From Piromyces finnis finn (Eukaryota; Fungi; Neocallimastigomycota): 37,530 nucleotides of DNA. Position 1 is the stretch's first letter. Every line of letters starts with the position of its first letter. The position numbers and the translations under genes are program-made. Under the pieces are notes generated by a model, which was given only the letters and a program-made list of their open reading frames with translations, ran no database searches and had not been told where the DNA came from. Below are positions 5,571 to 37,530 of this stretch, piece after piece. The stretch lies in NCBI GenBank assembly GCA_002104945.1, contig MCFH01000120.1, positions 1-37,530 of the forward strand, read 5' to 3'.

Positions 5571-8500
5571 CTTTAATAATTTTTTCTGGAATTTTTTCAT
5601 TTGTATCAATATTTAATTGGATATTTTTCCTATTATAATTATTTGTCCTATCTTTAAATTTGTTTTCAGTATACGGTTCTAATAACGAAACATGAAAGAC
5701 AGGATGACAACGCAAATTGTGTGGTAATTTCAGTTCAAATGCTAGGGGACTTACTTTTTTAATAATTTTAAATGGTCCTAGCATTTGATCAGACAGTTTT
5801 CTTTTAATGTTTTTTCCTGAAGGATTTATTTCTTTCAATAACCAAACTTTCATTCCAACTTCAAACTTTGGTGATTCAATTCTTCTTTGATCAGCATATT
5901 TTTTATAAGTTTCTTTTGCATGATCAAGATTTTCCTTTAGAAGTTTGATATTTTTATTTATATCTAAAATTCTTTGTTCAGCTCTATTTGGTTTATTAGC
6001 TGAAGGAATATCGATATTAAATTTGGGATTAAAACCATAGTTTGCATAAAATGGGGATTGATTGATCGATTGCTGTAATGTGTTGTTATAGGCAAATTCG
6101 GCAAAAGGAAGCAAATCAACCCAATTATTTTGTTTTTCATTTATAAAACAACGGAGATATTGTTCCAATATCCCGTTCACTCTCCGTTTGACCATCAGTC
6201 TGTGGGTGGTTAGCAGTGGAAAACTTAAGTTTAATATTTAATAAATCACACAGACGATTCCAAAATTCAGAAGTAAACTGAGTACAACGGTCAGAAACAA
6301 TTGATTCAAGGAAACCATGTAACCGAAAGATATTGTTGATAAAAACATCAGCTGCAATAGATGCAGTAGGAAGGCACCTTAAGGGAATAAAATGAGCCAT
6401 TTTGGTTAGTTTATCAACAATGACCATAATGGTAGTCATATCTTTGGACTTTGGTAATTCAACAATGAAGTCCATAGATAATTCAGACCAAGCTCTATCA
6501 GGAGTAGGAAGAGGAGATAGCAACCCATATGGTCTATGTCTTGGAACTTTAGCTTTACAACAAGTTGCACAGGACTTAACAAACTTTTTAACATCATCAT
6601 AATATTTTGGCCACCAAAAATTTATGCTAATTAATCCGATAGTCTTATTAATACCAAAATGGCCAGCGGACATAGAGTTATGATGCAACTCTAAAATTCT
6701 AGTTCTTAAATTAGGTGGAACATAAATTAAATTATTAAATAACAAATAGCCATCATCATCGATAAAATATTTATCAATGTTTTTACATGGTGGGGACGAG
6801 GATTTATTGTTATTATTAAAGTAAGAAAAAATTTTATTGTAAAACACATCTTTTTTTTGAGAGCATAAAATGGAATTAATCAAAGTATTATCATTTTTAT
6901 TAATATTATCAATTATGTTACAAGAAATTTTATTACATGAAATATTATTAAATAAATGATCACTACGTCTTGATAATAAATCAGGTTTTCCAGACGTTTT
7001 ACCAGCTCTGTAAATTAGCTTAAAGTCAAAACGAGATAGGAACTCATACCATCTTATTTGTCGTTGCGAAAGCATTTCAGGCTTTCTAGGGAACGTCAAA
7101 TTCTTATGATCAGTATAGATGGTAAGCTGATGTCTAGCACCTTCCAAATAGTGTCTCCATTCTTTCAAAGCTACTTTGATAGCAAGCAATTCTTTATCAT
7201 AGATTTGATAATTTCTTTGAGACTTTGTTAAACTTGAAGAAATAAAAGCAACCGGATGCAACTGATCCTCAAATTCTTGTGACAAAATTGCACCAACCGC
7301 GAAGTTACTTGCGTCAGTCTCGGCAATAAATAGTTTATTACTATCAGGATTTATAAGAATAGGTGCGGAAGTAAATAATTCTTTGAGGGTATCAAATGCT
7401 TTCTGATGTTCTGAGCTCCAATTAAAAGGAACATTTTTTCTAGTGAATTTATGCAGCGGATTAGCTATCCTAGCAAAATCTTTAATAAAAATTCTGTAAT
7501 AATTGCATAAACCAATAAAGGATGGACTTCTTTAACAGAAGTAGGAACAGGCCAGTCAAGAATAGCTTTCACTTTATTACTGTCCATTCTTAGGCCTTCC
7601 CTCGATAACACATATCCAAGAAAAGTTGTCTCAGGGACGTCGAATTCACACTTTTCTAATTTAACAAACAAATTATTATCTAACAATTTCTTTAATACTT
7701 TTTTCACGTGTACATGATGTTCTTCTAAACTATTTGAGAAAATTAAAATATCATCGATAAAGGAAATAACAAAATCATCCAAATATTCACTAAGGACATC
7801 ATTAATAAAATGCTGGAAGGTAGCAGGTGCATTCTTTAACCCGAACGGCATAACAAGATATTCAAAGTGCCCATACCTAGTTCTAAAGGCAGTTTTAAAT
7901 TCATCACCTTCCTTGATTCTAAGTTGTAGGCTGACCTTAAATCTAACTTAGTAAAATACTTTGCTCCTTTCACTCTATCTAATAAGTCACTGATCAAAGG
8001 AAGAAGGTTTGAGTTTCTAATAGTCATGTCGTTAAGCCTCCTATAATCAACACATAGCCATAATGAGCCATCTTTCTTTTTAACAAATAAAACTGGTGCC
8101 CCAGCAGGAGATGTAGATTTCCTAATGAAACCTTTTTCTAAATTTTCTTTAATGTAATTTTTTAGTTCATCTCTTTCTGCTTCAGTTAATGGATAAAGGG
8201 AACCATAAAACAAATTAGAATTATCTTTTAATCCAATTTCACAATCATATTCACGATGAGGTGGTAACATATTACAATTATTTTCATTAAACACTTCTTT
8301 ATAAATTAAATATTGTTTTGGCACTGAGACCAATTTTTTATCTTTATTTAAGTTGTTTTCATTAATTACATTTAATTTTTTCATATTAATACAATTAATA
8401 CACTTAAGACAATTATTACACTTACAATTATTATTACTACAAATACTATTAAAACTATTTTTATAATTATTACCAAGACTAAAACTATCACTAATACTAT

Positions 8501-9291
8501 TACAGTTATTACAATTTAAGTTTTTATTAAAATTCCTATAATGATAAAAATCATCATTATCACTATTATTATCAACAATAGTACAAATACGAGAACGACG
8601 ACCACGAACATATTCAAAATCTTCATCAGTATCTTCAGTCACCTCCGATAATTTTCTTTTGTGAACTTGAGGATTTGTCATAATTTTGGTTTCTTGTATA
8701 GAGTTGTTCTTTTTATTAGATTTCTTTTTTGATTTGTGCTTTCTTTTTCCATTATTACAATGGCGAGAACAATAATCAGAATTAAACCGAATTTTGCTCG
8801 CGTCGTGGTAGTTTTGAGGGCTATGCTTATCAATCCAAGGGATACCAAGAATGATATCGACATCTGGAATTCTAAGAGCATAGAGCTTGATAACCTCGAG
8901 ATGGTTTCGATAGCGAAGAATACACTTTTCTGTTTCACTTTCAACCACGGCTACATCACATCCCAATCCCGTAACTCTTATTAATTCCTTAACTTTTCTA
9001 GTTCCGATTTTATGTTTTTTAATAAAGTCATGGTGAATAAAGTTAAGATCAGATCCAGAATCAATTAGTACTCTAGCTCTGACTTCATCTCCTTCATTTG
9101 ACTTAATTGAGAAGTTAAGGATATTATTTTTCTTTCTTGATAAATTTTCTCTCTTCACAATTTCATGGATTGTAGCTATGTCCATAAATTTATCTAGCTT
9201 AATTATTCTATTCAAAGAGGCAGTATCGTTAGAATGTGAGCCTTTTTCCTGAATGATTCTAACATTCATTGGCTTTCTCTTGTTAGGACAG
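5566..9291 (-). pseudogene. Gypsy pol: protease, RT, RNase H and integrase, frameshifted
   Basis: [10 protein letters not shown] (protease). [27 protein letters not shown] and FIDD (RT). TDASNFAVG and YDKELLAI (RNase H). GHFG..CATC, SMDFIVELP, QTDGQTE and GPF (integrase). Frameshifts near 7920, 7480 and 6170. Confidence 0.95.
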
Positions 9292-9904
9292 TGTAATGGC
9301 GACACAGAAAGAATAGATTAGGATATCTATTCTATTACAATAACACTAAATTTAAAATAAAAAATAAAAATTGTTTTATTAAAAAATATCTTTTATTATA
9401 ATAGAAATTTTATTAATAACAATTACATTGATAAAATGATGAAAAATATCTTCTATTTATATTTTTCCTAAATACATTTATACTATATTATAACTATTTA
9501 TTTCTTATATATTATTTAAAATCTACACTAAAATCTTAATTATTAATAAATATTTAAACTATAATTATTTTTAGTAAAATGCAATTGGCAATTAAAATTA
9601 AGTACTATTCAATTTGAATATGTGCCCATGTATTATTGATATATTAATCATTTATTATTTATACATTATTTATCTATTTTAAAAAAAAACAATACTAAAA
9701 CTAGGGATTTAAATTGAGAATTTTAATTTACTTGTTAAACATTAAAAATAAATTAATAATTTATTTTGTTTTAAACTTTAATTATTAATAAATAAATTAT
9801 GTCTCATTTTCTTTTTCTGAATATAATTTGTGTAACTTAAACAATAATACTTGTGGCTTAAGTTACATTAAAGATATCAAGTTGAGGCATTTGATATCTT
9901 TACA
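9292..9904 (-). mobile_element. 613-bp solo LTR inserted just after the gypsy gag zinc knuckle
   Basis: Minus strand TGTAAAGATATC...CGCCATTACA with a perfect 5-bp TSD GACAG (9287-9291 and 9905-9909). Removing it restores QFNC-PNKRKP. Confidence 0.92.
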
Positions 9905-10128
9905 GACAGTTGAATTGTAGGTGTCCCGGCTTCTTGCATAAAAAACAAAGACCTTTTTTCTTTTCTTCTTCATGGGAATCATTGTTCTTAACATAGTAGT
10001 CCCTTTTTGGATCCGCATAGTGATGAGTATATTTATATCTTTACATCCTACCTCTTTGTATAATTCTGGTACTTCTAAGAAGCACAAGTATAAATTTATA
10101 GCTACCGTATTTACTGATGCTCACACTA
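9905..10128 (-). pseudogene. Gypsy gag C-terminal remnant with CCHC zinc knuckle
   Basis: A frame not shown in the ORF track reads ..EEEKKKGLCFLCKKPGHLQFNC (CX2CX4HX4C). Confidence 0.85.
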
Positions 10129-11517
10129 CACTACGTACAAAGAAGTTATGTCTTGTACGAATTCGAATTGTTGGAAAGCTGCCATTCAAGATGAATTAAA
10201 TAATTTGTATTCAAACAAGATCATGTCCTTGGTTAAAAATATCTTAAAAAATGAAAACATTATATCTACTAAATGGGTTTTTGCTATTAAAAGGGACAGC
10301 AATAATAAAATAGTACGTTTTAAAGCTAGACTTGTCTCCAGAGGTTTCCGTCAAAAACAGGGTATTGACTTGACCTATTTTCCTACTTTAAATATTGACA
10401 ATCTAAAATTTATTATTGCTATTGCAGCAAAATTTAAGTGGAATATATATCAGCTTGATATTAAAGCTTCCTACCTCAATGCTCTTTTAGATATGGATAT
10501 ATATACTACAATTCTGCTTGGAGATAGCAACTTTGGGGGATGATACTGGAAGCTGAATAAAGCTCTCTGTAGTTTAAAACAATCAGGAAGACAATGGAAC
10601 AAAACAATAGATTCAAATCATGTATATATAAGTTAAAAGAAAATAAATACGTAAAATGTATAATTGGTCTATAGTTGGAAAAAAAAATACAATAGAGAGA
10701 GTAATAAGCAAGATTAAAAGTAAATTTAAAATATCAAATAGTGGCCCATCAACTATATTCTAGAAATAAAGATCGAGAAGAAAGAATCCAAATACATTAT
10801 TTCTCAAGAGAATTACATTAATAATGTATTACAAAGATTTCATATGGAAAATGTACGTAGAAGAAATATGTCATGTATAACAATTGACAAGAGCACCTCA
10901 AATAATAATCCATTTGATAAAACCAAATATAAAAGTGCAATCGGTTCATTAATATACTTGTCAAAATGTACAAGACCGAATATTGCGTTTGCAGTAAACA
11001 AAGCTGCAAAAAAATCCGAAAGGCCAACAATATCTAACTGGAACATAATTGTAAATATATTCAGATACTTATCTACCATCAAGCATTATTTAATCGAATA
11101 TAGTGGGGAAGGAAAAATCCAAGGATACACTGATTCGGACTAAGGAGGCGCAGAAGACTTTAAATCTACCTCTGGAGGGATAATTCTAATGGGAAACAGC
11201 CCAATATGCTGGTTATCCGAGAAACGAAAATCTTATGGATCAAAAACATGGTAGATGAAATTTTTAATTACAACAAAAATATAACTTTATTCACCGGTAA
11301 CAAGGCAAACAAGAAAATAATAGAAAACGGTGAAATAAATACTGAGCTAAAACACATTAATATACACTACTATTTCATTATTGACAACATAGAAAAGAAT
11401 AATATAAAAATTGAATACATAAACACTAAAGAAATGCTAGCTGACCCTTTAAATAAAGATCTACCTGGTCCAAGAATGTTTGAATATACAAATAAGATAT
11501 TCTTAAAGAAAATCTAA
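10129..11517 (+). pseudogene. Copia reverse transcriptase and RNase H (disrupted)
   Basis: TYKEVMSC..WKAAIQDEL, KWVFAIK..RFKARLVSRGF, QLDIKASYLN, KALCSLKQSGRQWN, YKSAIGSLIYL..TRPNIAFAV, YTDSD*GG, KHINIHYYFI, MLADPLNK. Confidence 0.93.
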
Positions 11518-11529
11518 TTTGAGGGGGAG

Positions 11530-11860
<331 letters not shown>

Positions 11861-14800
11861 TATTATCTTTATTGATAACATTACATTATTGTACATTGTA
11901 GAAACAATTAATATTATAATAAAAACTATATAAATTTAATATTAGGAAAAATTACAATATAATAATATGTTCAATTTACATATTATTTTTATATCATATC
12001 TTATTATATAACTGTAATATTTACAATGTAACTTTTTCTCTTTGTTAACCTTATTAATAAAATTATTAATTAAATTTATTTCACAATAAAATTAATAATC
12101 TTTTATATTAGATTAATTAAAAAATTTAATAAAATCAAATTAATACTTTATAATTCAAAATGTTTTGATTAGATTATTCAAGTATTGGAAAAATATATAT
12201 AAAAAATAAATTTGAAAAAAATGAAATGATTTTTTTTCTTTGTTTTTTTATTACTCTATTAATATAAAAATAAAATAAAATAAAGAAATACATTTTTAAA
12301 GAAAATATATTTACTTAATTATTTAGTGTTTACATGTTGGATAAATAAAGTTCCTTAAGTTAATACAATATTAAATAAGAACATTGCAATTAAATATTAA
12401 AATATTTTTTAAAAGTTGTGATGGATGATAAATATGAAAGTCTTATGGACTTTAAGAACACTTTAGAATCTTTGGAATTTTTAAACTTTTATGAACCTCT
12501 TTGGAATAAGAATAAATTTTTTTCAATCTTTGTAAAACTTGAAGAATTAAATTTTTTTTGGTAGATTAAAAATTTATTGTATACTTAAAATTTAAGATTT
12601 AACACAAAATTTATTTTCATTTGGACTCTTTTGGATACCTTTGTATACTAATTAAAAGATAAAAACATGACTTTTATCTTTTATAATACATTTTTTCATT
12701 TATATTATTAGGTTATATATATAGAAAATAATAAAAATATTTAGATATATAAAAAATTTATTTTATATATCTAAATAAATTATAAAAAAAATTCTGGAAT
12801 ACTAAATAAATATAAAACTATAGTAAAGAAAAAGCAAAAATGAAAAAATATTAACTATTATTATTATTATTATTACCATTATCGGTACCATTATATTGAA
12901 TAAAAATATAAAAAATAATGTAAATATAAAAATATTATAACCATGTAATGTTTAAATTTGGTTATATTAAAATATATAAAATATATTTCATTTTCATTTT
13001 TTATAAAAATTTAATTTATTATACGTTATATATTAAGTTTAAATAAATAATCTGAATATATTATAAAAGAAAATAAAATAAAAATTTTAAATAATTTTTT
13101 GTCTAATTTTTATAATGAGAAAAATATTTAAATGGTGAATATAAGGAAAAAAAAAATAAATTTTGTAAAATTTAAAATTGGAAAAATAAAAAACATATCC
13201 TTAATTATTTATTATTATACCAATTATTCTTTAAAAATCTGCTTTCAATATTAATATATTAAGTATATAAGTAATAATAAATTTGTGGATATATCATGGT
13301 TATATGATAGATAATAATTTACCTTTATTATAATGGGTTAGGCTGTAAAAGAAAAAAAAATAAATTTTTAAAATTATATTTTTATTAATTAAAGTATTAT
13401 TATACATATATATTGAAGATTATTTATATTTTATTATATTGTTTTTATTATTAATTTTCTATAATATGTATAATTGAACTATTAGAAATCTTTTATTGTA
13501 AAATATCTTCATATATATATTTAATTTTTATTTTCAAATAATTTTAAAATTGTTATACAAAATTAAAAGTATTAATATTAACAATTAACAAATTACAACT
13601 CTTTTCTTTCATTTGGAATACTATTATAATTAAACATTAATAATTCATTTTTAATTATTTTTTTAGAATTTTATTATTTCTTTTTAAATATAATTTTAAA
13701 AGTTTAAATATTTCATTAAAAAAATTTGATTGAAAATTTTCTATTTTAATATTTAAATGTTGAAACTAAAAAACATTCTTTAATTATTAACCCTAATAAT
13801 TTTAATATAATAATATGTATATATATACATTAGAAAATGCATATTAATATATAAGATGCATTAATATTTATAAGTAATTAAAAATCTAATACCATAAAAA
13901 TACGAATAAATATTAATAAACTATATTAAAAAAATAATTAAGCAAATAATTTATTAATGATTGTATAAAAGAATGAATACAATATTGTTGGAGGTACTTT
14001 GTAGAAAATACAAAAGAAAAAAAGAAAAATACTATAATGCATAGTTTTTTTTGCAAATCTAATGTATATTTTGTATTATTAAAAATTTCATTAAACAATA
14101 TAAAACTAATATTTATATGATATTTAAAAAAAACAGTACGTACTCTAATAATATAAATAATATATTGTATAAAAGTGTTGAAATGAATAAAGCAAAAATT
14201 GAAAATTATTTATATCTTCGACTGTTGCAGTGAATTATTTAATATATGAAGAAAAAATAAATAGTAAAATATTTTATTGAAACTGATCACTTATTATCAA
14301 AAAAAGTACATATACAATAATTATTTATTAATAATATCTAAATAATGAAATAAAAATTTTATTATAATAAACATATGCATTTATATTCAATATTTAATCT
14401 AAGGAACCATATAAACAATTTATCTAATTGAAATAACATATATATATATATATATATTTATTATAACAAAAAAAATTATAAGAATATTTCAAAAATATTA
14501 GTTTTAATAATTTTTCTGCCTGAAAGTCTGAAAGAAGTCGAAATTCTTATGGCTAAAATATCTGGATAAATTCGTCCAAAATCTAGGATGTATATTAATT
14601 CATCAATTAACATTATTGTTAGCTCTATTAGTTAATGAGGTGTATATAATCAATATTATTGATTGAAACATTTCATTGTTAAAATATATATGCATTTTTT
14701 TTCATAATAGTTGAATTAAAAAAATTATAAATATTGATGAACTAGTCATCTTTTAAAAAATCTGTCGAATATTAAATGATTATAATTTAAAAAAAAATTA

Positions 14801-16052
14801 TTTTATAATGATATTAATCAAAGTTTTAAGAATGGTATTTTATTTAAAATATATATATATTGTTAAATAATTTATTGATAAAAATTGTGAAAATATTTTC
14901 TTAATTATTACAATAAAAAAATATTCACATGGGATGTAAAAAGAAAATAAGAAAAAATTTTGAAAAATTCAAAATTGAAAAAAATAAAATATACTTTTAA
15001 TATTTTATTAGTACCTCAAATATTATTTTAAAAAATGACATTTTATTAAGTAAATGAATAATAATAAACTTGTATATCATATCATGCATGTGTATATATC
15101 ATTAAAATGTTTTAATATATTATTATTATGTTATTTACACTATTTAAATTAAAGCATATTTTATTTAAATATTGGAATAATTTAATATTTAAAACTTGAA
15201 AATTAAAAAAAAATAAGCAATATTATGAAATAAAATTGTAAAATAAAAGATAATTTATTTTTTCCCAAATTACATTTTTATTAACTTAAAGTATTACACA
15301 TTATAGATTATTTATATTTTATAACTTTTTTATTTTTAATTTTATATAAACTTTAACTATTAAGTATATTTTAATATAATAACATCTTCATATTTAATAT
15401 TTATTTTCAACTATCTTTAAAAAAAATTCTTTATTTTAATATATTAAAAATTAAAAAAAAAAAAAATATTGAGACTTTTCAAATTATTTTAGTTAAAATA
15501 GTCATTTATTTGCATATTCATTTATTAATTTATATATATTAATTTATTTATTCGTTAATATAATAATAGATTCATTCATTTATCTATTAATAAATTGATT
15601 CTTTCATTGTTTTATTTAATTAATAATTCTTTTATTCAGTTATATATCATTTGATTTATTCTTTCATTTAATGATTTTGAAATAAGTAAAATTTTAAACT
15701 TTTCCATATGTCAAATTACATTTTTATCTATTTAAAAATATTAAGAATTTACCTATATTTATCAATGTATATTTAAAAATTATAGTTAATTATTAAATGA
15801 TAAAGTAATGGTTCTAATTTACTATTCAAAGATGTATAGATTATAATTTAACTTAATCAAAATCTATATTGATAAGTAATTTCTAACTACATTTCTACAT
15901 TTCTACCAAATAAAATATAAAATCAAGTATTACTTAGTATCAAAAATGAAAAAAAAATATGCTAATTATTATCATTATCACCACCATCATCATTATTATT
16001 TAATATAAAGTTTAATGTTTTTCTAACTTATATAGAATAGCAAGTTAAAATA

Positions 16053-16291
16053 AAATATAATAAATATTTCTTGTATAAAGTTGTATTGAAGTATTTAAAG
16101 TGTACTTCATTTATTATATTAATTCAATTTTCAACTATTTATTATATGTTTTATATATTTTTCTTTTAAATATAATAAATATAATAAATATGTCTTGTAT
16201 AAAGTTGTATTAAAATATTTAAAGTGTACTTCATTTTTTATATTAATTCAATTTTCAACTATTTATTATATGTTTTATATATTTTTCTTTT
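16053..16291. repeat. 124-bp tandem duplication (2 copies, left arm only)
   Basis: TTGTATAAAG occurs at 16071 and 16195. The mirror region (~28995-29110) has one copy. Confidence 0.9.
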
Positions 16292-17410: not shown

Positions 17411-17541
17411 TATTATTATTATTATTACTACTATTATTACTACTATTACTACTACTACTACTACTACTACTACTAATAATAATAATAATGATAATAATAA
17501 TGATAATAATAATAATGATAATAATAATAATGATAATAATA
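17411..17541. repeat. Compound microsatellite (TAT)n(TAC)n(AAT/GAT)n
   Basis: Read directly. Confidence 0.9.
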
Positions 17542-18455: not shown

Positions 18456-20123
18456 TTAATTAGTTATCCATTCATTGTAATCATTATATTTATTGAAATA
18501 TTTAATAAATTCTTGATTTTTAATTGTCATAGATAATATATAGGCATCTTTGTCATTACTTCCAATTCTCTTTAATTCTTCTAAAATAAATTTTACCTTT
18601 TGATCTGGTGTGCTTTCATCAAGCACATACATATCATTTACGACTTCATAATTATTATATTTTAATGCCATAGAGTACCATCCTGTTGGAAATTTTTTAT
18701 AGCATAAATATTCTTTTGCCAAAAGTGGGAAATATTCATTCTTTTTATGTTTAATTATTATATGAAATACGTATTCTGGGATTCTCAATTTTTCAATTTT
18801 TTTACTTTCATTTTTTAATTTTTCAATAATATAATATAAAACATCAAAAGATGCTTTCCTATGAAAAATTAAAAAATCTATTAAAATATTAAATGAATTA
18901 GTACTATCTATAAATCTATAATTTATATCTGCACCATTGGAAATGAGCAAAGAACATACATCGCTTCTACTTAATAAAAGAGAATAAACCGCGGGAGTTA
19001 TTGTTTCTGCGAAAATGTTTTTTGGAACTTCATAATCAAAGTTTGAATATGAAAATAAATTAATAATAGATTCAATAAAATTCAAAGGTAACCCGAAAGA
19101 TATAGCATTGGAGAGTACGTCATAATTTGAATCGTTAATATTGTCCATTAATGCATCATTATCTTGATAAAAACAAATCAATTTCTCAATATCGCATTCT
19201 TTAATAATATTATTTAATTTATTTCTTTTTTCATTGATGATTTTATCCATGCATCTTTTAACCTGGTTATTGTCCAACATTAATTTATAATTTAAACATA
19301 TATTATTGTTGTTATATTTATATTGGATAAAAAATTCGTATAACTTTGTTGAAAAACCAGGATGTTCGGCTTCATCAAAATTCTTAATTATATATTCAAT
19401 TTTACTTTTTAGCGATTTTCTTGAATCGTAACAAGAGAAAAATTTAAATTGGTCATATGTATTTTGGTAAATGCATCTGTAATACCACTGATAAGGTATA
19501 TCAAAAGATCTTTCACACATTACAATTTTGTCAAAGTTTTCTTTTGATATACCATCTTTTTTCTGATACATTGAAAGTAACTGATTAACTAGGTCTTTAT
19601 CACATAAATATTTGATATATGTGGATGCCAAATCGTATCTAAAATTAAAATTGTAAACATAATGTTTAATCATCATTATGTCCCAATCTCTGTTTAAAAG
19701 ATACATAAAGACCTTGGTAGTGAATAAATTATTTTCCATCAATAATTTTGCAATGTTAAAATTATTTTGAACATAATTGACATCGCCCCCTTTACTGATA
19801 ATGAAGTCTGCAATTTTAAAATGATTTTTTGAAATTGCAGCATATAGTGGCGATTTAATTTCACCATTTTTGAAAACGGTAAATTTATTGACATTATATT
19901 TTAATCTACTTAATAATATGTCTAAAAATTCAATTGAAACATTGCATTCAATTGCTGTGATAACTATGTCAAATTCTTTTTCTTTAATTAAATTAGTGAG
20001 TTGAACCATTTCATCTTGAAATTCAACCTCTTCAAAGAGGTCTTGTTCTGACTCATAAGAAATTGACATAGTGCTCTTATCACTGTCACAGTCATTATAA
20101 TCAATATTGTAATTGCTATTCAT
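18456..20123 (-). CDS. Intronless ankyrin-repeat protein, 555 aa
   Basis: Long open frame in otherwise very AT-rich DNA. Ankyrin-like motifs KSPLYAAISKNHFKIADFIISKGGDVNY and ITPAVYSLLLSRSDVCSLLISNGADINY. Acidic N-terminal tail. The two halves resemble each other around these motifs. Confidence 0.8.
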   Translation of the reverse strand: MNSNYNIDYNDCDSDKSTMSISYESEQDLFEEVEFQDEMVQLTNLIKEKEFDIVITAIECNVSIEFLDILLSRLKYNVNKFTVFKNGEIKSPLYAAISKNHFKIADFIISKGGDVNYVQNNFNIAKLLMENNLFTTKVFMYLLNRDWDIMMIKHYVYNFNFRYDLASTYIKYLCDKDLVNQLLSMYQKKDGISKENFDKIVMCERSFDIPYQWYYRCIYQNTYDQFKFFSCYDSRKSLKSKIEYIIKNFDEAEHPGFSTKLYEFFIQYKYNNNNICLNYKLMLDNNQVKRCMDKIINEKRNKLNNIIKECDIEKLICFYQDNDALMDNINDSNYDVLSNAISFGLPLNFIESIINLFSYSNFDYEVPKNIFAETITPAVYSLLLSRSDVCSLLISNGADINYRFIDSTNSFNILIDFLIFHRKASFDVLYYIIEKLKNESKKIEKLRIPEYVFHIIIKHKKNEYFPLLAKEYLCYKKFPTGWYSMALKYNNYEVVNDMYVLDESTPDQKVKFILEELKRIGSNDKDAYILSMTIKNQEFIKYFNKYNDYNEWITN

Positions 20124-22546
20124 TTTGAAAAATAAAATAAAAATAGTTGAATTTGAATTTGTTTAACAAACTAAAGATAAATAATATTTTACTGGTGTTT
20201 TTTTTAAATAAAAAACAATAAATATTAAAAGATAAAAAAAATGTATTTTATTTAATAAATAAAATTTAAAGTAATATTTAAATATGATTTGTTAATTAAA
20301 TATTCTTAATAAATAAAGTTGTATTTTTTTATTCAATTAAATTTAAACTTTAATTTTATTTTATATATAAAGTAGTTTAATTAATTATATATCAGTTATT
20401 AAATCTTTTGAATTTTTTTTTATTATTTAAATGGATCAACCATTATTAATATTGAAATAAAAAAATAAAAAAATCAACTTTTCAGTAAATATAATGAATG
20501 ATATTAATTATATTATATATTTTTAATATTCAAAAAGCATATTATAGTATTTATTATAGTATAATTAAATAAAAAAAACTATTAATTAATTGTTATAAAG
20601 AGTTTTTTTTTATTAGAAATAAAATATATATTTCATTTATACAATTTATTATATTATATTTATATTTAATTAAATTTAGGATATTTGATGATGTTAATTT
20701 ATGTAATAATAAATATATAATTGGAACAGTTTGTTCAATTGTAGAAATAACTACATTAAAAAGAAATTTTTTTTTGGTAGTAATTTACCTATTTAATGGA
20801 AACAAAAAATATTAATTCAAGAGGAGAAAATTTCCAAAAACAACAATAACAACAAAACGAAAAAAAATTTAAATATATATAGAATCATATTTATTGAATA
20901 CCATATTGGAAATAATGAAAGTAAAAAAATATATATATATATATACAATTGATTACTAAACAAATAATAATATAATGCTTATATTTTAATATAATGTTTT
21001 ATTCTAAAATAATCTTCATCTATGTAATTTCATATATTTTATAAAATTAAATGAAAAAATGTTACTTTTTTGGTTACTTTTTTTTGTGTTGTTATAAATA
21101 TAAATATAAACATATAGTTTATTTTAAATTTTTTTACATTTCAAGTATGTAATAGAATGGATGATTAATAATAGTAATAAAATAAATATTAAAATATACC
21201 TTAATAAATTTTTAAAATATAGATAATGATAATGGTTTTGAATTATATTGAATTAACCTTTTTGAACTTTATGTTCTTTCATATTATTGTATATAGATAA
21301 AATTATTAAATATCAATGATAAAATTAGTGAAATAATTTTAGCTTTAGTTAATTTTTTTGATGTCTTTATTAATAAATATTAATATAATTTATTAACATT
21401 TAAATATACTTTTTATTCTTTCTCAAAATATTATACATTTATACAATTAATTTTCTTTTCTTTTAAGTATTATTTTAAATATATATTTTTAAAAAACACC
21501 TTTTAAATATAGTCACAACTTTTATAAAAGTAATTTTAATTCATTTTAATGATTACATATCTAATAATAATTTATTCAAAAAAAATTTAAATAAATTTCA
21601 TTAATCAATTTTTTGATACTTTCTTCATAAATCGGAGCTCTAAAATCTGTATTATTATTTTTATCTAATACTAATACTATTATTAATTATAACATTTTCA
21701 TATTTTTTTATTTATCATCACTTTCATCACTTTTATTGGGTCAATACTAATGTTTTTTTAAGATATAAAATTTTCTACTACTAATTTTTCTAAATACTCA
21801 ATTTCATTCTATTGTTTTTTCTTTAAAACTCATACCCATATATTTACTATAACTACATTTGCTATCACCTATATTTTTTATCATATAATTAATCTTCTAA
21901 TTGGATTATTATTTGTTGCATTTTCATATAAAGTAGTTATACTATTTAATTTATTTGATTCAATTGACATTTATGTGTTTTTTTGTTGATAATAGAAAAT
22001 AAAATCTATATCCATTATTTTAATACTTTTTTAACAGTCAAATTCATATACAATTTCAAATTTTGAAACTGGATAACTTCCGTCAATTATTTATATTTGT
22101 TGTAAAACTTTATATCTTATGCTTAATTAAAATTATTCATTGTGTATATTAGTTTTTCTTGATTCTTCATCGGTTTTTCATATTTATATGAAGGGATATA
22201 AATAATTTTCATATAGCATCAAATCAAGCAATTGGAAATTAATAGATATTGGTTAGGTAAAGAAAGTAATACATAGTGTGAATCTAATTAGTATTTGATC
22301 ACCTGAAAATTAAAACATAGTAATAATTTTACAAATAATATTATCATAGGTATCAGGTATCTCTTTCATAGAACGTAATTTCTACTTTCTGTAATTTTTG
22401 TATGGATAGAAATAAAATAGTTACATTAGTAGTTTTTTACTACCTTTAAATGAATTGAAAATACTTAAATATAAAATATAAGCCTCTCATGTAATAAGTA
22501 TAATCTTTCTTATAAATTATATTATTTAATTTTATTTATATAAAAA

Positions 22547-22771
22547 TAAATTAATGATATAATTATTTTTTTTTAATTTTTTATTATATTAGTAGAATTA
22601 AATATAATAAATTTATTAACTTTAATGTTTCTGTATTTTCAATTACTATATAATTAGAAAAGATTTTTATATTTTTAATTGTGATAAATTAAAGTTAACA
22701 AATTTATATAAATCTATAATACATGTATTAATTTGAATGTAAAGTTATTAAATAAATAAAATAATTTTTAT
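22547..22771. other. Central ~225-bp spacer of the palindrome
   Basis: Exact complementarity stops at ..TATATAAAAA (22546) and TTTTTATATA.. (22772). A few more bases pair only with homopolymer slippage. Confidence 0.9.
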
Positions 22772-25195: not shown

Positions 25196-26862
25196 ATGAA
25201 TAGCAATTACAATATTGATTATAATGACTGTGACAGTGATAAGAGCACTATGTCATTTCTTATGAGTCAGAACAAGACCTCTTTGAAGAGGTTGAATTTC
25301 AAGATGAAATGGTTCAACTCACTAATTTAATTAAAGAAAAAGAATTTGACATAGTTATCACAGCAATTGAATGCAATGTTTCAATTGAATTTTTAGACAT
25401 ATTATTAAGTAGATTAAAATATAATATCAATAAATTTACCGTTTTCAAAAATGGTGAAATTAAATCGCCACTATATGCTGCAATTTCAAAAAATCATTTT
25501 AAAATTGCAGACTTCATTATCAGTAAAGGGGGCGATGTCAATTATGTTCAAAATAATTTTAACATTGCAAAATTATTGATGGAAAATAATTTATTCACTA
25601 CCAAGGTCTTTATGTATCTTTTAAACAGAGATTGGGACATAATGATGATTAAACATTATGTTTACAATTTTAATTTTAGATACGATTTGGCATCCACATA
25701 TATCAAATATTTATGTGATAAAGACCTAGTTAATCAGTTACTTTCAATGTATCAGAAAAAAGATGGTATATCAAAAGAAAACTTTGACAAAATTGTAATG
25801 TGTGAAAGATCTTTTGATATACCTTATCAGTGGTATTACAGATGCATTTACCAAAATACATATGACCAATTTAAATTTTTCTCTTGTTACGATTCAAGAA
25901 AATCGCTAAAAAGTAAAATTGAATATATAATTAAGAATTTTGATGAAGCCGAACATCCTGGTTTTTCAACAAAGTTATACGAATTTTTTATCCAATATAA
26001 ATATAACAACAATAATATATGTTTAAATTATAAATTAATGTTGGACAATAACCAGGTTAAAAGATGCATGGATAAAATCATCAATGAAAAAAGAAATAAA
26101 TTAAATAATATTATTAAAGAATGCGATATTGAGAAATTGATTTGTTTTTATCAAGATAATGATGCATTAATGGACAATATTAACGATTCAAATTATGACG
26201 TACTCTCCAATGCTATATCTTTCGGGTTACCTTTGAATTTTATTGAATCTATTATTAATTTATTTTCATATTCAAACTTTGATTATGAAGTTCCAAAAAA
26301 CATTTTCGCAGAAACAATAACTCCCGCGGTTTATTCTCTTTTATTAAGTAGAAGCGATGTATGTTCTTTGCTCATTTCCAATGGTGCAGATATAAATTAT
26401 AGATTTATAGATAGTACTAATTCATTTAATATTTTAATAGATTTTTTAATTTTTCATAGGAAAGCATCTTTTGATGTTTTATATTATATTATTGAAAAAT
26501 TAAAAAATGAAAGTAAAAAAATTGAAAAATTGAGAATCCCAGAATACGTATTTCATATAATAATTAAACATAAAAAGAATGAATATTTCCCACTTTTGGC
26601 AAAAGAATATTTATGCTATAAAAAATTTCCAACAGGATGGTACTCTATGGCATTAAAATATAATAATTATGAAGTCGTAAATGATATGTATGTGCTTGAT
26701 GAAAGCACACCAGATCAAAAGGTAAAATTTATTTTAGAAGAATTAAAGAGAATTGGAAGTAATGACAAAGATGCCTATATATTATCTATGACAATTAAAA
26801 ATCAAGAATTTATTAAATATTTCAATAAATATAATGATTACAATGAATGGATAACTAATTAA
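25196..26862 (+). pseudogene. Second copy of the ankyrin-repeat gene with a 1-nt frameshift (or a 517-aa protein from ATG 25309)
   Basis: Reads ATGTCATTTCTT (25250-25261) against ATGTCAATTTCTT in the left copy, so one A is missing near 25255. One substitution (V>I, 25426 vs 19892). The deletion could be a consensus error. Confidence 0.65.
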
Positions 26863-27749: not shown

Positions 27750-27878
27750 TATTATTATTTTTATTATTATTATTATTATTTATTATTATTATATTATTAT
27801 TATTATTATTATTATTATTAGTAGTAGTAGTAGTAGTAGTAGTAGTAATAGTAGTAATATAGTAATAATAATAATAAT
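27750..27878. repeat. Mirror compound microsatellite (ATT)n(GTA)n(ATA)n
   Basis: Mirror of 17411-17541 with a different length and different interruptions. Confidence 0.9.
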
Positions 27879-30800: not shown

Positions 30801-33800
30801 ATTTAGATATTATTAATAAATAATTATTGTATATGTACTTTTTTTGATAATAAGTGATCAGTTTCAATAAAATATTTTACTATTTATTTTTTCTTCATAT
30901 ATTAAATAATTCACTGCAACAGTCGAAGATATAAATAATTTTCAATTTTTGCTTTATTCATTTCAACACTTTTATACAATATATTATTTATATTATTAGA
31001 GTACGTACTGTTTTTTTTAAATATCATATAAATATTAGTTTTATATTGTTTAATGAAATTTTTAATAATACAAAATATACATTAGATTTGCAAAAAAAAC
31101 TATGCATTATAGTATTTTTCTTTTTTCTTTTGTATTTTCTACAAAGTACCTCCAACAATATTGTATTCATTCTTTTATACAATCATTAATAAATTATTTG
31201 CTTAATTATTTTTTTAATATAGTTTATTAATATTTATTCGTATTTTTATGGTATTAGATTTTTAATTACTTATAAATATTAATGCATCTTATATATTAAT
31301 ATGCATTTTCTAATGTATATATATACATATTATTATATTAAAATTATTAGGGTTAATAATTAAAGAATGTTTTTTAGTTTCAACATTTAAATATTAAAAT
31401 AGAAAATTTTCAATCAAATTTTTTTAATGAAATATTTAAACTTTTAAAATTATATTTAAAAAGAAATAATAAAATTCTAAAAAAATAATTAAAAATGAAT
31501 TATTAATGTTTAATTATAATAGTATTCCAAATGAAAGAAAAGAGTTGTAATTTGTTAATTGTTAATATTAATACTTTTAATTTTGTATAACAATTTTAAA
31601 ATTATTTGAAAATAAAAATTAAATATATATATGAAGATATTTTACAATAAAAGATTTCTAATAGTTCAATTATACATATTATAGAAAATTAATAATAAAA
31701 ACAATATAATAAAATATAAATAATCTTCAATATATATGTATAATAGTACTTTAATTAATAAAAATATAATTTTAAAAATTTATTTTTTTTTCTTTTACAG
31801 CCTAACCCATTATAATAAAGATAAATTATTATCTATCATATAACCATGATATATCCACAAATTTATTATTACTTATATACTTAATATATTAATATTGAAA
31901 GCAGATTTTTAAAGAATAATTGGTATAATAATAAATAATTAAGGATATGTTTTTTATTTTTCCAATTTTAAATTTTACAAAATTTATTTTTTTTTTCCTT
32001 ATATTCACCATTTAAATATTTTTCTCATTATAAAAATTAGACAAAAAATTATTTAAAATTTTTATTTTATTTTCTTTTATAATATATTCAGATTATTTAT
32101 TTAAACTTAATATATAACATATAATAAATTAAATTTTTATAAAAAATGAAAATGAAATATATTTTATATATTTTAATATAACCAAATTTAAACATTACAT
32201 GGTTATAATATTTTTATATTTACATTATTTTTTATATTTTTATTCAATATAATGGTACCGATAATGGTAATAATAATAATAATAATAGTTAATATTTTTT
32301 CATTTTTGCTTTTTCTTTACTATAGTTTTATATTTATTTAGTATTCCAGAATTTTTTTTATAATTTATTTAGATATATAAAATAAATTTTTTATATATCT
32401 AAATATTTTTATTATTTTCTATATATATAACCTAATAATATAAATGAAAAAATGTATTATAAAAGATAAAAGTCATGTTTTTATCTTTTAATTAGTATAC
32501 AAAGGTATCCAAAAGAGTCCAAATGAAAATAAATTTTGTGTTAAATCTTAAATTTTAAGTATACAATAAATTTTTAATCTACCAAAAAAAATTTAATTCT
32601 TCAAGTTTTACAAAGATTGAAAAAAATTTATTCTTATTCCAAAGAGGTTCATAAAAGTTTAAAAATTCCAAAGATTCTAAAGTGTTCTTAAAGTCCATAA
32701 GACTTTCATATTTATCATCCATCACAACTTTTAAAAAATATTTTAATATTTAATTGCAATGTTCTTATTTAATATTGTATTAACTTAAGGAACTTTATTT
32801 ATCCAACATGTAAACACTAAATAATTAAGTAAATATATTTTCTTTAAAAATGTATTTCTTTATTTTATTTTATTTTTATATTAATAGAGTAATAAAAAAA
32901 CAAAGAAAAAAAATCATTTCATTTTTTTCAAATTTATTTTTTATATATATTTTTCCAATACTTGAATAATCTAATCAAAACATTTTGAATTATAAAGTAT
33001 TAATTTGATTTTATTAAATTTTTTAATTAATCTAATATAAAAGATTATTAATTTTATTGTGAAATAAATTTAATTAATAATTTTATTAATAAGGTTAACA
33101 AAGAGAAAAAGTTACATTGTAAATATTACAGTTATATAATAAGATATGATATAAAAATAATATGTAAATTGAACATATTTTTATATTAGTAATTTTTCCT
33201 AATATTAAATTTATATAGTTTTATTATAATATTAATTGTTTCTACAATGTACAAGAATGTAATGTAAATGTATGACAAATGTAATATCATATAATGAATG
33301 ATCCATATAGTTCCAACCTTATAATTGGACAATTAGTTATAAAGTAAGCCTCATTAGTATAAATAGACTAGAATAAATATTTTTTTAAAAAGGGCTTCTT
33401 TTTTAGTTAGAATTTTTAATATTTGACAATGACAGAACGTTTTAGTATTTAGACAGAATAGAAATATTGGAACTTAATAAATAAAGTTATTAATAAAACA
33501 TATATTATTTAAAATTTAATTCTTTCTACATAAAATTAACTGATATGAAATTAATATGTCTAGCTACATATTAGCCATATTTAAAAATTTATATATAATA
33601 TTTCATAATAATAATATAATAATTGATATATATTATAATACATTATTTATATATTAGTTATAGAATTCATGTACATATTTCATTATATTCTTAAATATTA
33701 ATATTATATATTAGTATTAATTTTATTGTAATACTTATTTGTATTACATTACCTTTCCTTATATAGTAATATTTCATATAAAATGTAAAATATATTATAC

Positions 33801-34098
33801 TATATCCTATTTAATTATTATTCATATATTATGAATACATTACATTATATAATTGATATTCAATTATATTATAGGAATTTTATAATATAAAAATATTCAT
33901 GTAAAAATAATTAATAATTAGAAAGAGAAGAGCTTTAATAATTAATAAGAAAATATTATAAGTGAAATTATTAATAAGAGAGAAGTTAATAGTAATAAAA
34001 TATTTTTCACCTAATATAATAAATTATAAATAAACTAATATTAAATTACTACAACATAAAAGAAACTTATATCATAACCTGTATCAGATGCAAGGTCA

Positions 34099-34268
34099 TG
34101 TGACCATAAAAAATAAAATAAAATAAATAAAAAATGATTATCTCTACAACACGTAGATATTACGTTTACAACACTTTTAATACATGTTTATATTTTTATA
34201 AGTTAGTCACGTGTGTTTATAAATATATGATATAGATAAATAAAATTATGTGTCCATAAATGTTCACA
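34099..34268 (-). repeat. Copia 3' LTR, intact right copy (170 bp)
   Basis: Minus strand TGTGAACA...ATGGTCACA with TGTGA/TCACA termini. PPT GAGGGGGAG at 34277-34269. Confidence 0.88.
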
Positions 34269-34280
34269 CTCCCCCTCAAA

Positions 34281-34420
34281 TTAGATTTTCTTTAAAAATA
34301 TCTTATTTGTATATTCAAACATTCTTGGACCAGGTAGATCTTTATTTAAAGGGTCAGCTAGCATTTCTTTAGTGTTTATGTATTCAATTTTTATATTATT
34401 CTTTTCTATGTTGTCAATAA

Positions 34421-34466
<46 letters not shown>

Positions 34467-35834
34467 TTCCGAGTGCATTTCTCCCATCGATCAGAGTTAG
34501 CTCCAATGGTGGTTCTTAGAGAAACGTTGGCTCATTCCTATTGCTAGGTGGTTGTGACCCTCCTGGTCTGTCATACTGTCAATAATGAAATAGTAGTGTA
34601 TATTAATGTGTTTTAGCTCAGTATTTATTTCACCGTTTTCTATTATTTTCTTGTTTGCCTTGTTACCGGTGAATAAAGTTATATTTTTGTTGTAATTAAA
34701 AATTTCATCTACCATGTTTTTGATCCATAAGATTTTCGTTTCTCGGATAACCAGCATATTGGGCTATTTCCCATTAGAATTATCCCTCCAGAGGTAGATT
34801 TAAAGTCTTCTGCGCCTCCTTAGTCCGAATCAGTGTATCCTTGGATTTTTCCTTCCCCACTATATTCGATTAAATAATGCCTGATGGTAGATAAGTATCT
34901 GAATATATTTACAATTATGTTCCAGTTAGATATTGTTAGCCTTTCGGATTTTTTTGCAGCTTTGTTTACTGCAAACGCAATATTCGGTCTTGTACATTTT
35001 GACAAGTATATTAATGAACCGATTGCACTTTTATATTTGGTTTTATCAAATGGATTATTATTTGAGGTGCTCTTGTCAATTGTTATACATGACATATTTC
35101 TTCTACGTACATTTTCCATATGAAATCTTTGTAATACATTATTAATGTAATTCTCTTGAGAAATAATGTATTTGGATTCTTTCTTCTCGATCTTTATTTC
35201 TAGAATATAGTTGATGGGCCACTATTTGATATTTTAAATTTACTTTTAATCTTGCTTATTACTCTCTCTATTGTATTTTTTTTTCCAACTATAGACCAAT
35301 TATACATTTTACGTATTTATTTTCTTTTAACTTATATATACATGATTTGAATCTATTGTTTTGTTCCATTGTCTTCCTGATTGTTTTAAACTACAGAGAG
35401 CTTTATTCAGCTTCCAGTATCATCCCCCAAAGTTGCTATCTCCAAGCAGAATTGTAGTATATATATCCATATCTAAAAGAGCATTGAGGTAGGAAGCTTT
35501 AATATCAAGCTGATATATATTCCACTTAAATTTTGCTGCAATAGCAATAATAAATTTTAGATTGTCAATATTTAAAGTAGGAAAATAGGTCAAGTCAATA
35601 CCCTGTTTTTGACGGAAACCTCTGGAGACAAGTCTAGCTTTAAAACGTACTATTTTATTATTGCTGTCCCTTTTAATAGCAAAAACCCATTTAGTAGATA
35701 TAATGTTTTCATTTTTTAAGATATTTTTAACCAAGGACATGATCTTGTTTGAATACAAATTATTTAATTCATCTTGAATGGCAGCTTTCCAACAATTCGA
35801 ATTCGTACAAGACATAACTTCTTTGTACGTAGTG
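34281..35834 (-). pseudogene. Mirror copy of copia RT and RNase H, with the poly(A) retroinsertion inside RNase H
   Basis: Mirror of 10129-11517, with four transitions and the 34426-34576 insert. Confidence 0.92.
34426..34576 (-). mobile_element. Poly(A)-tailed retroposed insert (SINE-like, retrocopied small RNA, or 5'-truncated LINE end)
   Basis: 113-nt body (54/113 G+C) plus A38 on the minus strand. Flanked by the direct repeat TGTCAATAATGAAA (34412-34425 and 34577-34590), which is single at the left-arm empty site (~11373-11386). Confidence 0.9.
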
Positions 35835-36058
35835 TAGTGTGAGCATCAGTAAATACGGTAGCTATAAATTTATACTTGTGCTTCTTAGAAGTACCAGAAT
35901 TATACAAAGAGGTAGGATGTAAAGATATAAATATACTCATCACTATGCGGATCCAAAAAGGGACTACTATGTTAAGAACAATGATTCCCATGAAGAAGAA
36001 AAGAAAAAAGGTCTTTGTTTTTTATGCAAGAAGCCGGGACACCTACAATTCAACTGTC
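35835..36058 (+). pseudogene. Mirror gypsy gag zinc-knuckle remnant
   Basis: GLCFLCKKPGHLQFNC; mirror of 9905-10128. Confidence 0.85.
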
Positions 36059-36671
36059 TGTAAAGATATCAAATGCCTCAACTTGATATCTTTAATGTAA
36101 CTTAAGCCACAAGTATTATTATTTAAGTTACACAAATTATATTCAGAAAAAGAAAATGAGACATAATTTATTTATTAATAATTAAAGTTTAAAACAAAAT
36201 AAATTATTAATTTATTTTTAATGTTTAACAAGTAAATTAAAATTCTCAATTTAAATCCCTAGTTTTAGTATTGTATTTTTTTAAAATAGATAAATAATGT
36301 ATAAATAATAAATGATTAATATATCAATAATACATGGGCACATATTCAAATTGAATAGTACTTAATTTTAATTGCCAATTGCATTTTACTAAAAATAATT
36401 ATAGTTTAAATATTTATTAATAATTAAGATTTTAGTGTAGATTTTAAATAATATATAAGAAATAAATAGTTATAATATAGTATAAATGTATTTAGGAAAA
36501 ATATAAATAGAAGATATTTTTCATCATTTTATCAATGTAATTGTTATTAATAAAATTTCTATTATAATAAAAGATATTTTTTAATAAAACAATTTTTATT
36601 TTTTATTTTAAATTTAGTGTTATTGTAATAGAATAGATATCCTAATCTATTCTTTCTGTGTCGCCATTACA
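36059..36671 (+). mobile_element. Mirror copy of the 613-bp solo LTR
   Basis: TGTAAAG...ATTACA with TSD CTGTC (36054-36058 and 36672-36676). Confidence 0.92.
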
Positions 36672-37530
36672 CTGTCCTAACAAGAGAAAGCCAATGAATG
36701 TTAGAATCATTCAGGAAAAAGGCTCACATTCTAACGATACTGCCTCTTTGAATAGAATAATTAAGCTAGATAAATTTATGGACATAGCTACAATCCATGA
36801 AATTGTGAAGAGAGAAAATTTATCAAGAAAGAAAAATAATATCCTTAACTTCTCAATTAAGTCAAATGAAGGAGATGAAGTCAGAGCTAGAGTACTAATT
36901 GATTCTGGATCTGATCTTAACTTTATTCACCATGACTTTATTAAAAAACATAAAATCGGAACTAGAAAAGTTAAGGAATTAATAAGAGTTACGGGATTGG
37001 GATGTGATGTAGCCGTGGTTGAAAGTGAAACAGAAAAGTGTATTCTTCGCTATCGAACCATTCGAGGTTATCAAGCTCTATGCTCTTAGAATTCCAGATG
37101 TCGATATCATTCTTGGTATCCCTTGGATTGATAAGCATAGCCCTCAAAACTACCACGGACGCGAGCAAAATTCGGTTTAATTCTGATTATTGTTCTCGCC
37201 ATTGTAATAATGGAAAAGAAAAGCACAAATCAAAAAAGAAATCTAATAAAAAGAACAAACTCTATACAAGAAACCAAATTATGACAAAATCCTCAAGTTC
37301 ACAAAGAAAATTATCGGAGGTGATGAGATACTGATGAAGATTTGAATATGTTCGTGCGTGTTCTCGTATTTGTACTATTGTTGATAATAATAGTGATAAT
37401 GATGATTTTTATCATTATAGGAATTTTAATAAAAACTTAAATTGTAATAACTGTAATAGTATTAGTGATAGTTTTAGTCTTGGTTAATTAATTATAAAAA
37501 TAGTTTTTAATGTAATTTTGTTAGTTAATA
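36672..37530 (+). pseudogene. Mirror gypsy protease region, cut by the window end
   Basis: [10 protein letters not shown]. Mirror of 8432-9291, with many small indels after ~37050. Confidence 0.88.

Follow-up and report, generated by a model that had tools for sequence, protein, structure and literature searches.

Does the 29-kb inverted repeat that fills most of the small contig C25 of the Piromyces finnis assembly stand in the genome as a palindrome, or did it arise when two copies of one segment were joined head to head? The initial annotation preferred a real, young inverted duplication and gave as its alternative a chimeric fold-back contig with arms from two haplotypes or paralogues. 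The window studied here was the entire contig (37,530 bp), and the search space was the whole assembly (56,455,805 bp, 232 contigs), which was produced from PacBio reads only, using Falcon, FinisherSC and Quiver (PMC5622200).

Anatomy of the mirror-image repeat

The inverted repeat was recovered by an inverted-repeat scan, by self-BLAST and by a global alignment of the two arms, and its dimensions (Table 1) agree with the arms of ~14-15 kb and the spacer of ~225 bp described at the outset. On its outer side the palindrome is bounded simply by the end of the contig, and when the assembly was searched for the left flank and for the truncated-gypsy junction at 9292, neither had a further copy by which the right arm could be prolonged. 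A palindrome that reaches the end of a small contig in a long-read-only assembly is what an artefact would be expected to look like, and C25 is more likely a small leftover contig from a tangled multi-copy region of this PacBio-only assembly.

Table 1. Features of contig C25 and of its two arms
Feature	Position	Strand	Remarks
Non-palindromic left flank	1..8431	.	All nested retrotransposon pieces, each segment with matches of 80-99% at many other loci
LTR in left flank	4553-5300		
Ty3/gypsy element, 3' part		-	RT, RNase H, integrase and Tf2-SH3 domains in ORFs at 5566-9305(-)
Left arm	8432-22546	+	Scan, self-BLAST, arm alignment; better-polished copy
Ty1/copia-type RT fragment inside arms	10148..11510	+	RVT_2 domain; target of the right-arm retro-insertion
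Left-only replacement of the 842-bp segment	11691-11877 (187 bp)	+	T-rich
Extra 125-bp tandem unit, left only	16089-16213	+	Self-BLAST, alignment, paralogue comparison
Ankyrin-repeat ORF, left arm	18456..20123	-	555 aa, intact
Fold-back junction	22546..22547	.	Equivalent of C5:3671 joined to reverse complement of C5:~3895
Spacer	22547-22770	-	224-225 nt; native continuation of arm
Right arm	22771-37530	-	Self-BLAST, arm alignment; runs off contig end
Right counterpart of ankyrin ORF	25309..26862	+	Shortened to 517 aa
Right-only 842-bp segment	33266-34107	-	Inner part is a dispersed repeat
Poly(A) retro-insertion, right only	34427-34576	-	113-nt GC-rich body + A37
Ragged end of right arm, poorly polished	37057..37530	.	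~20 indel events in 470 bp

The microhomology at the fold-back junction amounts to 1 nt or, with a 1-nt slip permitted, to 5 nt (ATAAA), in local sequence that is ~90% AT. Beyond this ATAAA, no native inverted repeat was found at the junction in C5:3666-3680 and 3885-3897, and, with a microhomology of only 1-5 nt, a programmed site is therefore not marked here by a native inverted repeat. The assembly search found the junction on no contig other than C25. The spacer is the reverse complement of C5:3672-~3895 and equals the corresponding sequence of C5, C33 and C28 save for the length of one A-run and, for C28, a few substitutions. Because every base of the spacer aligns to native sequence on these three contigs, an adapter at the centre was rejected, just as the initial annotation had seen no SMRTbell adapter there. 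A short single-copy spacer between inverted arms, closed by a microhomology junction, is the anatomy of a real fold-back. The palindrome had been described as centred on an ankyrin gene; the ankyrin ORF in fact sits 2.4 kb off centre, and its counterpart in the right arm is shortened by a 1-bp deletion at ~25255, where C5 and C28 match the left arm.

Two arms with mutations of their own

The arm alignment contains 17 substitutions between 8906 and 22546 (0.13%), where about 11 had been counted by eye, with a single one across the inner 5 kb and ~0.2% farther out. The reported excess of transitions holds, at 13 of 19 substitutions, a count that includes 2 in the error cluster at the contig end. 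When the substitutions were polarised with paralogue outgroups, derived changes were found in both arms; RIP-like mutation between the arms was considered and rejected, since the 17 substitutions are too few and run in both directions.

The structural differences tell a similar story. The arm-specific retro-insertion was confirmed as a poly(A) insertion in the right arm, flanked by target-site duplications of 15 nt, ATTTCATTATTGACA, at 34577-34591 and 34412-34426; the left arm keeps the site empty, at 11372-11386. Its 113-nt body has copies of 100% identity at 39 other scored loci (321 candidates) and found no match in Rfam. What had been called an 839-bp indel is indeed a length change specific to one arm, but its exact sizes are 842 bp in the right arm against 187 bp in the left, where an unbroken run of 155 T at 11680-11834 is followed by ~25-45 nt of left-only sequence. 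This T run with its filler was tried as the tail of a retroelement family and rejected, the filler having no other copies and not being a repeat family. The right-arm stretch 33044-33540 matches C5:48189-48708 at 90%, and since the dispersed repeat of the 842-bp segment extends into the shared part of the arm, the right arm holds the ancestral state. The duplication given as 124 bp stands as an extra tandem unit in the left arm, although the unit measures 125 bp. The two left units are ~93% alike; in the right arm there is a single unit, a hybrid, and in the older paralogues there is also just one. Assembly stutter was considered since the left units are only 93% alike, and was rejected because the second left unit has ancestral features of the paralogues on C192 and C43, and the right unit is a hybrid; judged from these comparisons of sequence, the difference has the pattern of natural unequal exchange.

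The arms therefore differ by more than sequencing error, as seen in the retro-insertion, the 842-bp replacement, the tandem unit and the polarised substitutions, and the initial view that these differences are biological, and beyond what one fold-back molecule would create, is borne out by the derived events found in each arm. A single molecule read on both strands was rejected, as each arm shows derived changes, structural ones as well as point changes, that are peculiar to it. Independent derived mutations in the two arms imply two physical copies, so that any reading of the palindrome as an artefact needs two natural copies that were joined.

The two arms are also unequal in quality. Among the 1-bp indels the left arm is longer in 25 and the right arm in 5 (p=3e-4), and, against the paralogue outgroups, the right arm has ~16 derived deletions and no insertions; the deletion that puts its ankyrin ORF out of frame is one of these. 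In the stretch 8432-8905 the arms differ at 40 columns, at all of which (40/40) the left arm is the same as five other gypsy copies and the right arm alone departs. The right arm is thus the weaker consensus, with an excess of error-like deletions.

Other copies of the segment and the origin of the join

Contigs C5, C28 and C33 each begin inside the arm, pass through the spacer and continue for >20 kb in sequence that is colinear among the three, with a gene for a 1380-aa ankyrin protein downstream of the spacer, which on C5 lies at 3949-8091. That a non-inverted continuation across the breakpoint exists on three contigs of the same assembly points to an artefact, and the initial annotation had itself held that a spacer joined to unrelated sequence in most reads would speak against a real duplication; at the level of contigs, such a joining is what was found. 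The older paralogues on C214 and C192 also carry the arm and the right-hand sequence, in one common orientation. The copy counts are unbalanced: at >=98% identity the outer arm has two copies only in the assembly, the left and right arms themselves, while the right-hand sequence is found on C5, C33, C38 and C186 (all ~99-100%; C38 and C186 by coordinates and scores alone) as well as on C28. Most of these right-hand copies start at contig position 1, without the left arm, which leaves at least 3-4 near-identical right-hand sides lacking left arms.

The divergence between C5 and C33, which amounts to 3 substitutions over the initial 8 kb and to 0.15-0.3% farther out, is mirrored by the divergence between the two arms, the profile being continuous across the junction. 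Since the low central divergence of the arms is also seen between C5 and C33, which are non-palindromic, arm-to-arm conversion is not needed to explain it. As to whether the arms are each other's closest relatives, the two characters disagree and only one of them is informative: a 5-bp TATTA tandem unit, present in both arms and missing from C5 and the outgroup C28, groups the left arm with the right, whereas the only inner SNP (19892, C in the left arm and T in both the right arm, at 25426, and C5), which is unpolarised, groups the right arm with C5. The TATTA unit is an observation against a chimera; either C5 is a third copy, or the end of the C5 contig was mis-polished.

Taking these findings together, we consider it probable, though well short of certain, that the head-to-head join at 22546|22547 is chimeric or otherwise not the standing arrangement of the genome. 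This reading is favoured because of the native continuation on C5, C28 and C33, the ragged contig end, the lower quality of the right arm and the bookkeeping of the copies. In this reading the genome has several natural near-identical (99-99.9%) copies of one segment, in the order retrotransposon debris, AT-rich DNA, the 555-aa ankyrin gene, intergenic DNA, the 1380-aa ankyrin gene and onward. The left and right arms would be the outer parts of two such copies, which would be alleles or else segmental duplicates of very recent origin, each with its own real mutations. Natively, each copy would run through what appears here as a spacer into the 1380-aa ankyrin gene, as on C5, C28 and C33. One or a few long reads that folded back, whether as a snap-back or hairpin artefact of the library or as a rare somatic molecule, could have turned back ~225 nt downstream, almost without homology, and would have given the assembler an edge that leads out of one copy and into the other in reverse complement. 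The outcome would be a leftover contig of 37.5 kb whose second arm breaks off raggedly where a read ends. PacBio ligation libraries have been documented to yield chimeric reads, which are a suspected cause of false duplications (PMC8495745). The anatomy of the repeat, its native continuation, the numbers of copies and the unequal error load of the arms are observations; that the joining read or reads were artefactual or rare is what we infer. The preference of the initial annotation for a young inverted duplication thus keeps its premise, that the arms differ biologically, but the standing palindrome is not favoured; its chimeric alternative is essentially the reading favoured here, although unproven.

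A real, fixed inverted duplication, with undisturbed copies of the segment persisting as C5, C33 and C28, is possible but in our estimate unlikely. It would have begun when, ~50 bp downstream of the 1380-aa ankyrin gene, the DNA broke or a fork stalled. Fold-back priming, or a template switch, at minimal homology would then have copied at least 14 kb in reverse and left a 225-nt single-copy spacer, and the arms would later have diverged by 0.13% substitutions, one retro-insertion, one deletion and one unit change. The independent derived mutations of each arm, which require two physical copies, fit such a history, as does the anatomy of spacer and microhomology, which is that of known fold-back inversions, and the shared, derived TATTA unit is expected of sister arms. 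The assembler offers a further argument on this side. Falcon usually splits a seed read at a junction that no other read spans, and a lone chimeric read should therefore not survive pre-assembly; the survival of this junction would point to support from several reads, or to a join that FinisherSC made with a raw read. A fixed duplication, however, needs two more outer arms for the right-hand contigs, which are missing from the assembly, and it leaves unexplained both why the divergence between the arms tracks that between C5 and C33 and why the errors are asymmetric, given that the arms should have equal depth. Moreover, instability is a known property of long palindromes whose spacers are short, and here 14-kb arms around a 225-nt spacer would have to persist long enough for three structural changes.

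The other way in which the junction could be biological is a somatic or sub-clonal fold-back, that is, a molecule, palindromic or capped by a hairpin, that a minority of the nuclei in the sequenced culture contained and from which a few reads were threaded into the contig, the difference between the arms coming from the assembler switching copies. This would reconcile several junction-supporting reads with the native adjacency on three contigs, and spontaneous palindromes and inverted triplications have been found at low frequency in deep long-read data from another fungus (bioRxiv 10.1101/2025.01.14.632981). Nevertheless, nothing in the assembly separates a somatic molecule from a library artefact, and the junction has no inverted repeat or other site feature, and we regard this reading as very improbable.

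What follows depends on which of these is correct. If the join is an artefact, then a single multi-copy tangle in a much-used gut fungus reference has been broken up into C25, C5, C28, C33, C38 and C186, and the counts of genes (ankyrin genes, retroelements) and the palindrome statistics taken from such small contigs would be inflated. If it is real, an anaerobic gut fungus would harbour a palindrome >=29 kb long around a 225-nt spacer, formed immediately downstream of a large ankyrin gene by a fold-back nearly free of homology, and old enough for each arm to have had its own retro-insertion or deletion. Such a large, diverged palindrome would bear on the tolerance of long inverted repeats in an extremely AT-rich genome and would offer, in Piromyces, a natural system in which to study how a genome tolerates long palindromes whose arms are so little separated.

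Comparison with known fold-back and palindromic systems

Hairpin contigs from fold-back long reads resemble C25 in that it is a small leftover from PacBio-only data, its palindrome runs to a ragged end, its second arm is less polished and the native continuation of its breakpoint is found elsewhere. They differ in that the centre of C25 is a native loop of 225 nt with no SMRTbell adapter, and the arms carry real variants, so that two natural copies were threaded and not one molecule twice. With fold-back inversions (breakage-fusion-bridge intermediates, DUP-TRP/INV-DUP, yeast palindromic amplification) C25 shares inverted arms, a short single-copy spacer and a junction with minimal microhomology at an intergenic, AT-rich site. 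Here, however, the undisturbed adjacency occurs three times in the same assembly, and the far end, where a second junction or a telomere belongs, lies beyond the contig.

The palindromes of the human Y chromosome, in which the arms are kept alike by arm-to-arm gene conversion, are likewise built of long arms, which in C25 are >99.8% identical, around a short unique spacer, with a gene in each arm. The arms of C25 are 100-fold shorter, and their low central divergence is matched by the non-palindromic pair C5 and C33. The macronuclear rDNA palindrome of Tetrahymena consists, like C25, of two units joined head to head around a short centre that is not itself palindromic. It forms at a pre-existing 42-bp inverted repeat beside a programmed breakage site and is then capped by telomere addition, whereas in C25 no native inverted repeat at the junction exceeds 5 nt, the arms hold sequence other than rDNA, and a telomere is not seen.

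Anatomy of the palindrome

The 37,530-bp window spans a complete contig, one of 232 in an assembly of 56,455,805 bp that was built from PacBio reads alone, with Falcon, FinisherSC and Quiver as the software (PMC5622200); the DNA of the window is extremely AT-rich (13-30% GC). The long palindrome noticed in the initial annotation is borne out, as its arms, here called L (left) and R (right), are recovered by scanning for inverted repeats, by self-BLAST and by global alignment. Its centre, which had been placed on an ankyrin gene, is intergenic and lies 2.4 kb from the ankyrin-repeat ORF.

Features of the palindrome and the sister contigs that enter its arm
Feature	Window position	Length	Remarks
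Left flank	left of L	8.4 kb	nested retrotransposon debris
L	8432-22546		from scan, self-BLAST and global alignment
Spacer	22547-22770	224-225 nt	
R	22771-37530		reaches and runs off the contig end
Arm: Ty3/gypsy element			truncated, 5' part
Arm: RT fragment			copia-type
Arm: non-coding DNA		~6.5 kb	13% GC
Arm: single ankyrin-repeat ORF	18456-20123 (L)		
Contig C5	starts inside arm, equivalent of 18871	59.5 kb	
Contig C28	starts inside arm, equivalent of 19939	36 kb	
Contig C33	starts inside arm, equivalent of 21987	33 kb	

A retrotransposon LTR of about 750 bp at 4553-5300 has more than 20 copies across the genome at 98-99% identity, and the gypsy element that owns it has at least five near-full copies at 98%, so this family was active in recent times. 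The copy in the window is truncated at 9292, and the sequence just past it (9292-9904) is a 95% match to part of the 5.7-kb tandem unit of C28, for which reason one retroelement appears to have inserted into, or recombined with, another. Nearer the centre, a 603-bp stretch (21800-22402, mirrored at ~22915-23517) lacks any ORF reaching 50 aa; its conservation is 96% on contigs C214, C192 and C43 and 74-79% at more than 20 further loci. It could be a dispersed element that has escaped annotation, or else a conserved gene piece, non-coding or poor in exons, beside ankyrin-family genes.

Differences between the arms

Within 8906-22546, L and R differ by 17 substitutions, and polarising these with older paralogues of 90-96% identity (on C214, C192 and C43) places derived substitutions on both arms. 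Because each arm has its own derived changes, L and R are two physical copies that mutated independently, and one molecule read on both strands is ruled out by these independent mutations. The earlier list of differences (a retro-insertion, an 839-bp indel, a 124-bp duplication and substitutions) was essentially correct, and the arm-specific derived changes uphold the accompanying argument that a single fold-back read could not create them.

The retro-insertion, found in R only, is of the poly(A) type, with 150 nt made up of a 113-nt body and A37, and is flanked by a perfect 15-nt target-site duplication whose empty site is present in L. The GC-rich body (34464-34576, minus strand) had no match in Rfam and is 100% identical at 39 of the 39 other loci scored (321 first-look candidates), an identity that marks it as a very young and apparently active retroposon, either a SINE-like element or a LINE 3' tail. 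At the replacement, 187 bp in L stands opposite 842 bp in R, and the R state is ancestral and the L state derived, since a dispersed repeat spans, without a break, the boundary between the 842-bp segment and the shared arm. The replacing stretch in L includes an uninterrupted T homopolymer of 155 nt (11680-11834), followed by ~25-45 nt of L-only filler that is not a repeat family; run and filler could mark a deletion that accompanied retroposition and left a very long tail, or an oddity of the consensus. The 125-bp tandem unit is present twice in L (93% alike), once as a hybrid in R and once in the older paralogues, which looks like natural unequal exchange; assembly stutter was rejected as its source because the unit pattern fits such exchange.

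Among the 1-bp indels, L is longer at 25 and R at 5 (p=3e-4), and L is longer in all six of the remaining short indels (3-11 bp and the 125-bp unit). Compared with the outgroups, R has ~16 derived 1-bp deletions, several outside homopolymers, and no insertions, and L has three deletions and four insertions. An R deletion of 1 bp at ~25255 frameshifts the ankyrin ORF, giving 517 aa in R versus 555 aa, and both C5 and C28 side with L at this site. In the outermost 470 bp, 40 of the 40 differing columns are departures of R from L and five other gypsy copies. The indel asymmetry and the end columns thus show R to be the consensus with the poorer support, finishing where a read ends raggedly. Poor contig ends are general in this assembly, the first 2 kb of C33 having eight indels relative to C5, and therefore only the interior asymmetry between L and R counts as evidence.

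The junction and the native continuation

On C5, C28 and C33, the arm is followed by the spacer and then by over 20 kb of sequence that is colinear among the three contigs (96-99.8% identity). The spacer is the reverse complement of C5:3672-~3895, and R and spacer together match C5 and C33 up to ~C5:3895 except for the length of one A-run. Past the spacer the window becomes the reverse complement of L; the three contigs go straight on, with the stop codon of a 1380-aa ankyrin-repeat gene 50-odd bp beyond the turn point. This entry of the spacer into other sequence, seen at contig level and three times, is an observation that the initial annotation had set against its own claim of a real duplication. 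In the older paralogues on C214 and C192, the arm and the right-hand sequence share one orientation, and a search for this fold-back junction on the other contigs of the assembly found none. Microhomology at the junction amounts to 1 nt exact, or 5 nt (ATAAA) with a 1-nt slip, no more than chance in ~90% AT sequence.

At an identity of 98% or above, the outer arm (9.3-18.8 kb) exists in two copies, L and R only. The right-hand side is present on C5, C33, C38 and C186 (~99-100%; C38 and C186 being known here from match coordinates alone) and on C28 (96-98%); on C33, C38 and C186 it begins at contig position 1, with the left arm missing or nearly missing. Two arms without right sides and several right sides without arms look like the pattern of a broken repeat tangle. 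Between L and R, the inner 5 kb has one substitution and the rest of the arm ~0.2%; between C5 and C33, the first 8 kb has three, after which divergence is 0.15-0.3%, and the profile is continuous across the junction. The inner region has a single SNP, at 19892, where R and C5 have T in common.

At least four of the contigs C5, C33, C38, C186 and C28 have the segment that bears the 1380-aa ankyrin gene, at 99-100% identity; the cause is either a tangle of multiple copies or alleles, or a reference in which one segment was assembled redundantly. C5 and C28 terminate in tandem repeats, perfect or nearly so, that extend exactly to the contig end (C5, 50197-54247 / 55482-59532, 100.000% over 4051 bp; C28, 23474-30406 / 29180-36111, 99.97% over 6933 bp). 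On C28 the unit has a period of 5.7 kb and an intact Ty3/gypsy gag-pol ORF of 1530 aa. These repeats are either LTR elements arrayed in tandem or the product of a loop in the assembler.

Origin of the head-to-head join

We consider it probable, if well short of certain, that the contig consists of two near-identical copies of one segment joined head-to-head via one or more fold-back reads; the copies would be natural and the reads would supply the link, and on this reading the palindrome is not a standing genome structure. The native continuation on three contigs, the copy counts, the continuous divergence and the excess of errors in R all disfavour the initial proposal of a real, young inverted duplication. 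Falcon normally splits a seed read where no second read spans it, which should eliminate a chimeric read that stands alone; support for the join would in that case have come from several reads, or from FinisherSC bridging with a raw read. The survival of the join would speak for a real, fixed inverted duplication, which we nevertheless regard as unlikely. A 5-bp tandem unit, TATTA, present in L and R and missing from C5 and C28, would make L and R sisters relative to C5 and so fits a real palindrome. The unit is equally compatible with a three-copy arrangement, in which C5 is the third copy and L and R lead on into C33 and C38, or with a polishing error at the C5 contig end, since a C5-only 1-bp deletion sits 123 bp away. 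A fixed duplication would moreover need extra outer arms, which are missing from a high-coverage assembly.

It is far less probable still that a rare somatic fold-back molecule was captured; for another fungus, deep long-read sequencing is reported to contain genuine palindromic molecules at low frequency (bioRxiv 10.1101/2025.01.14.632981). For the favoured reading, the joining of two natural copies by fold-back reads, chimeric PacBio reads are documented, together with false duplications possibly caused by them (PMC8495745).
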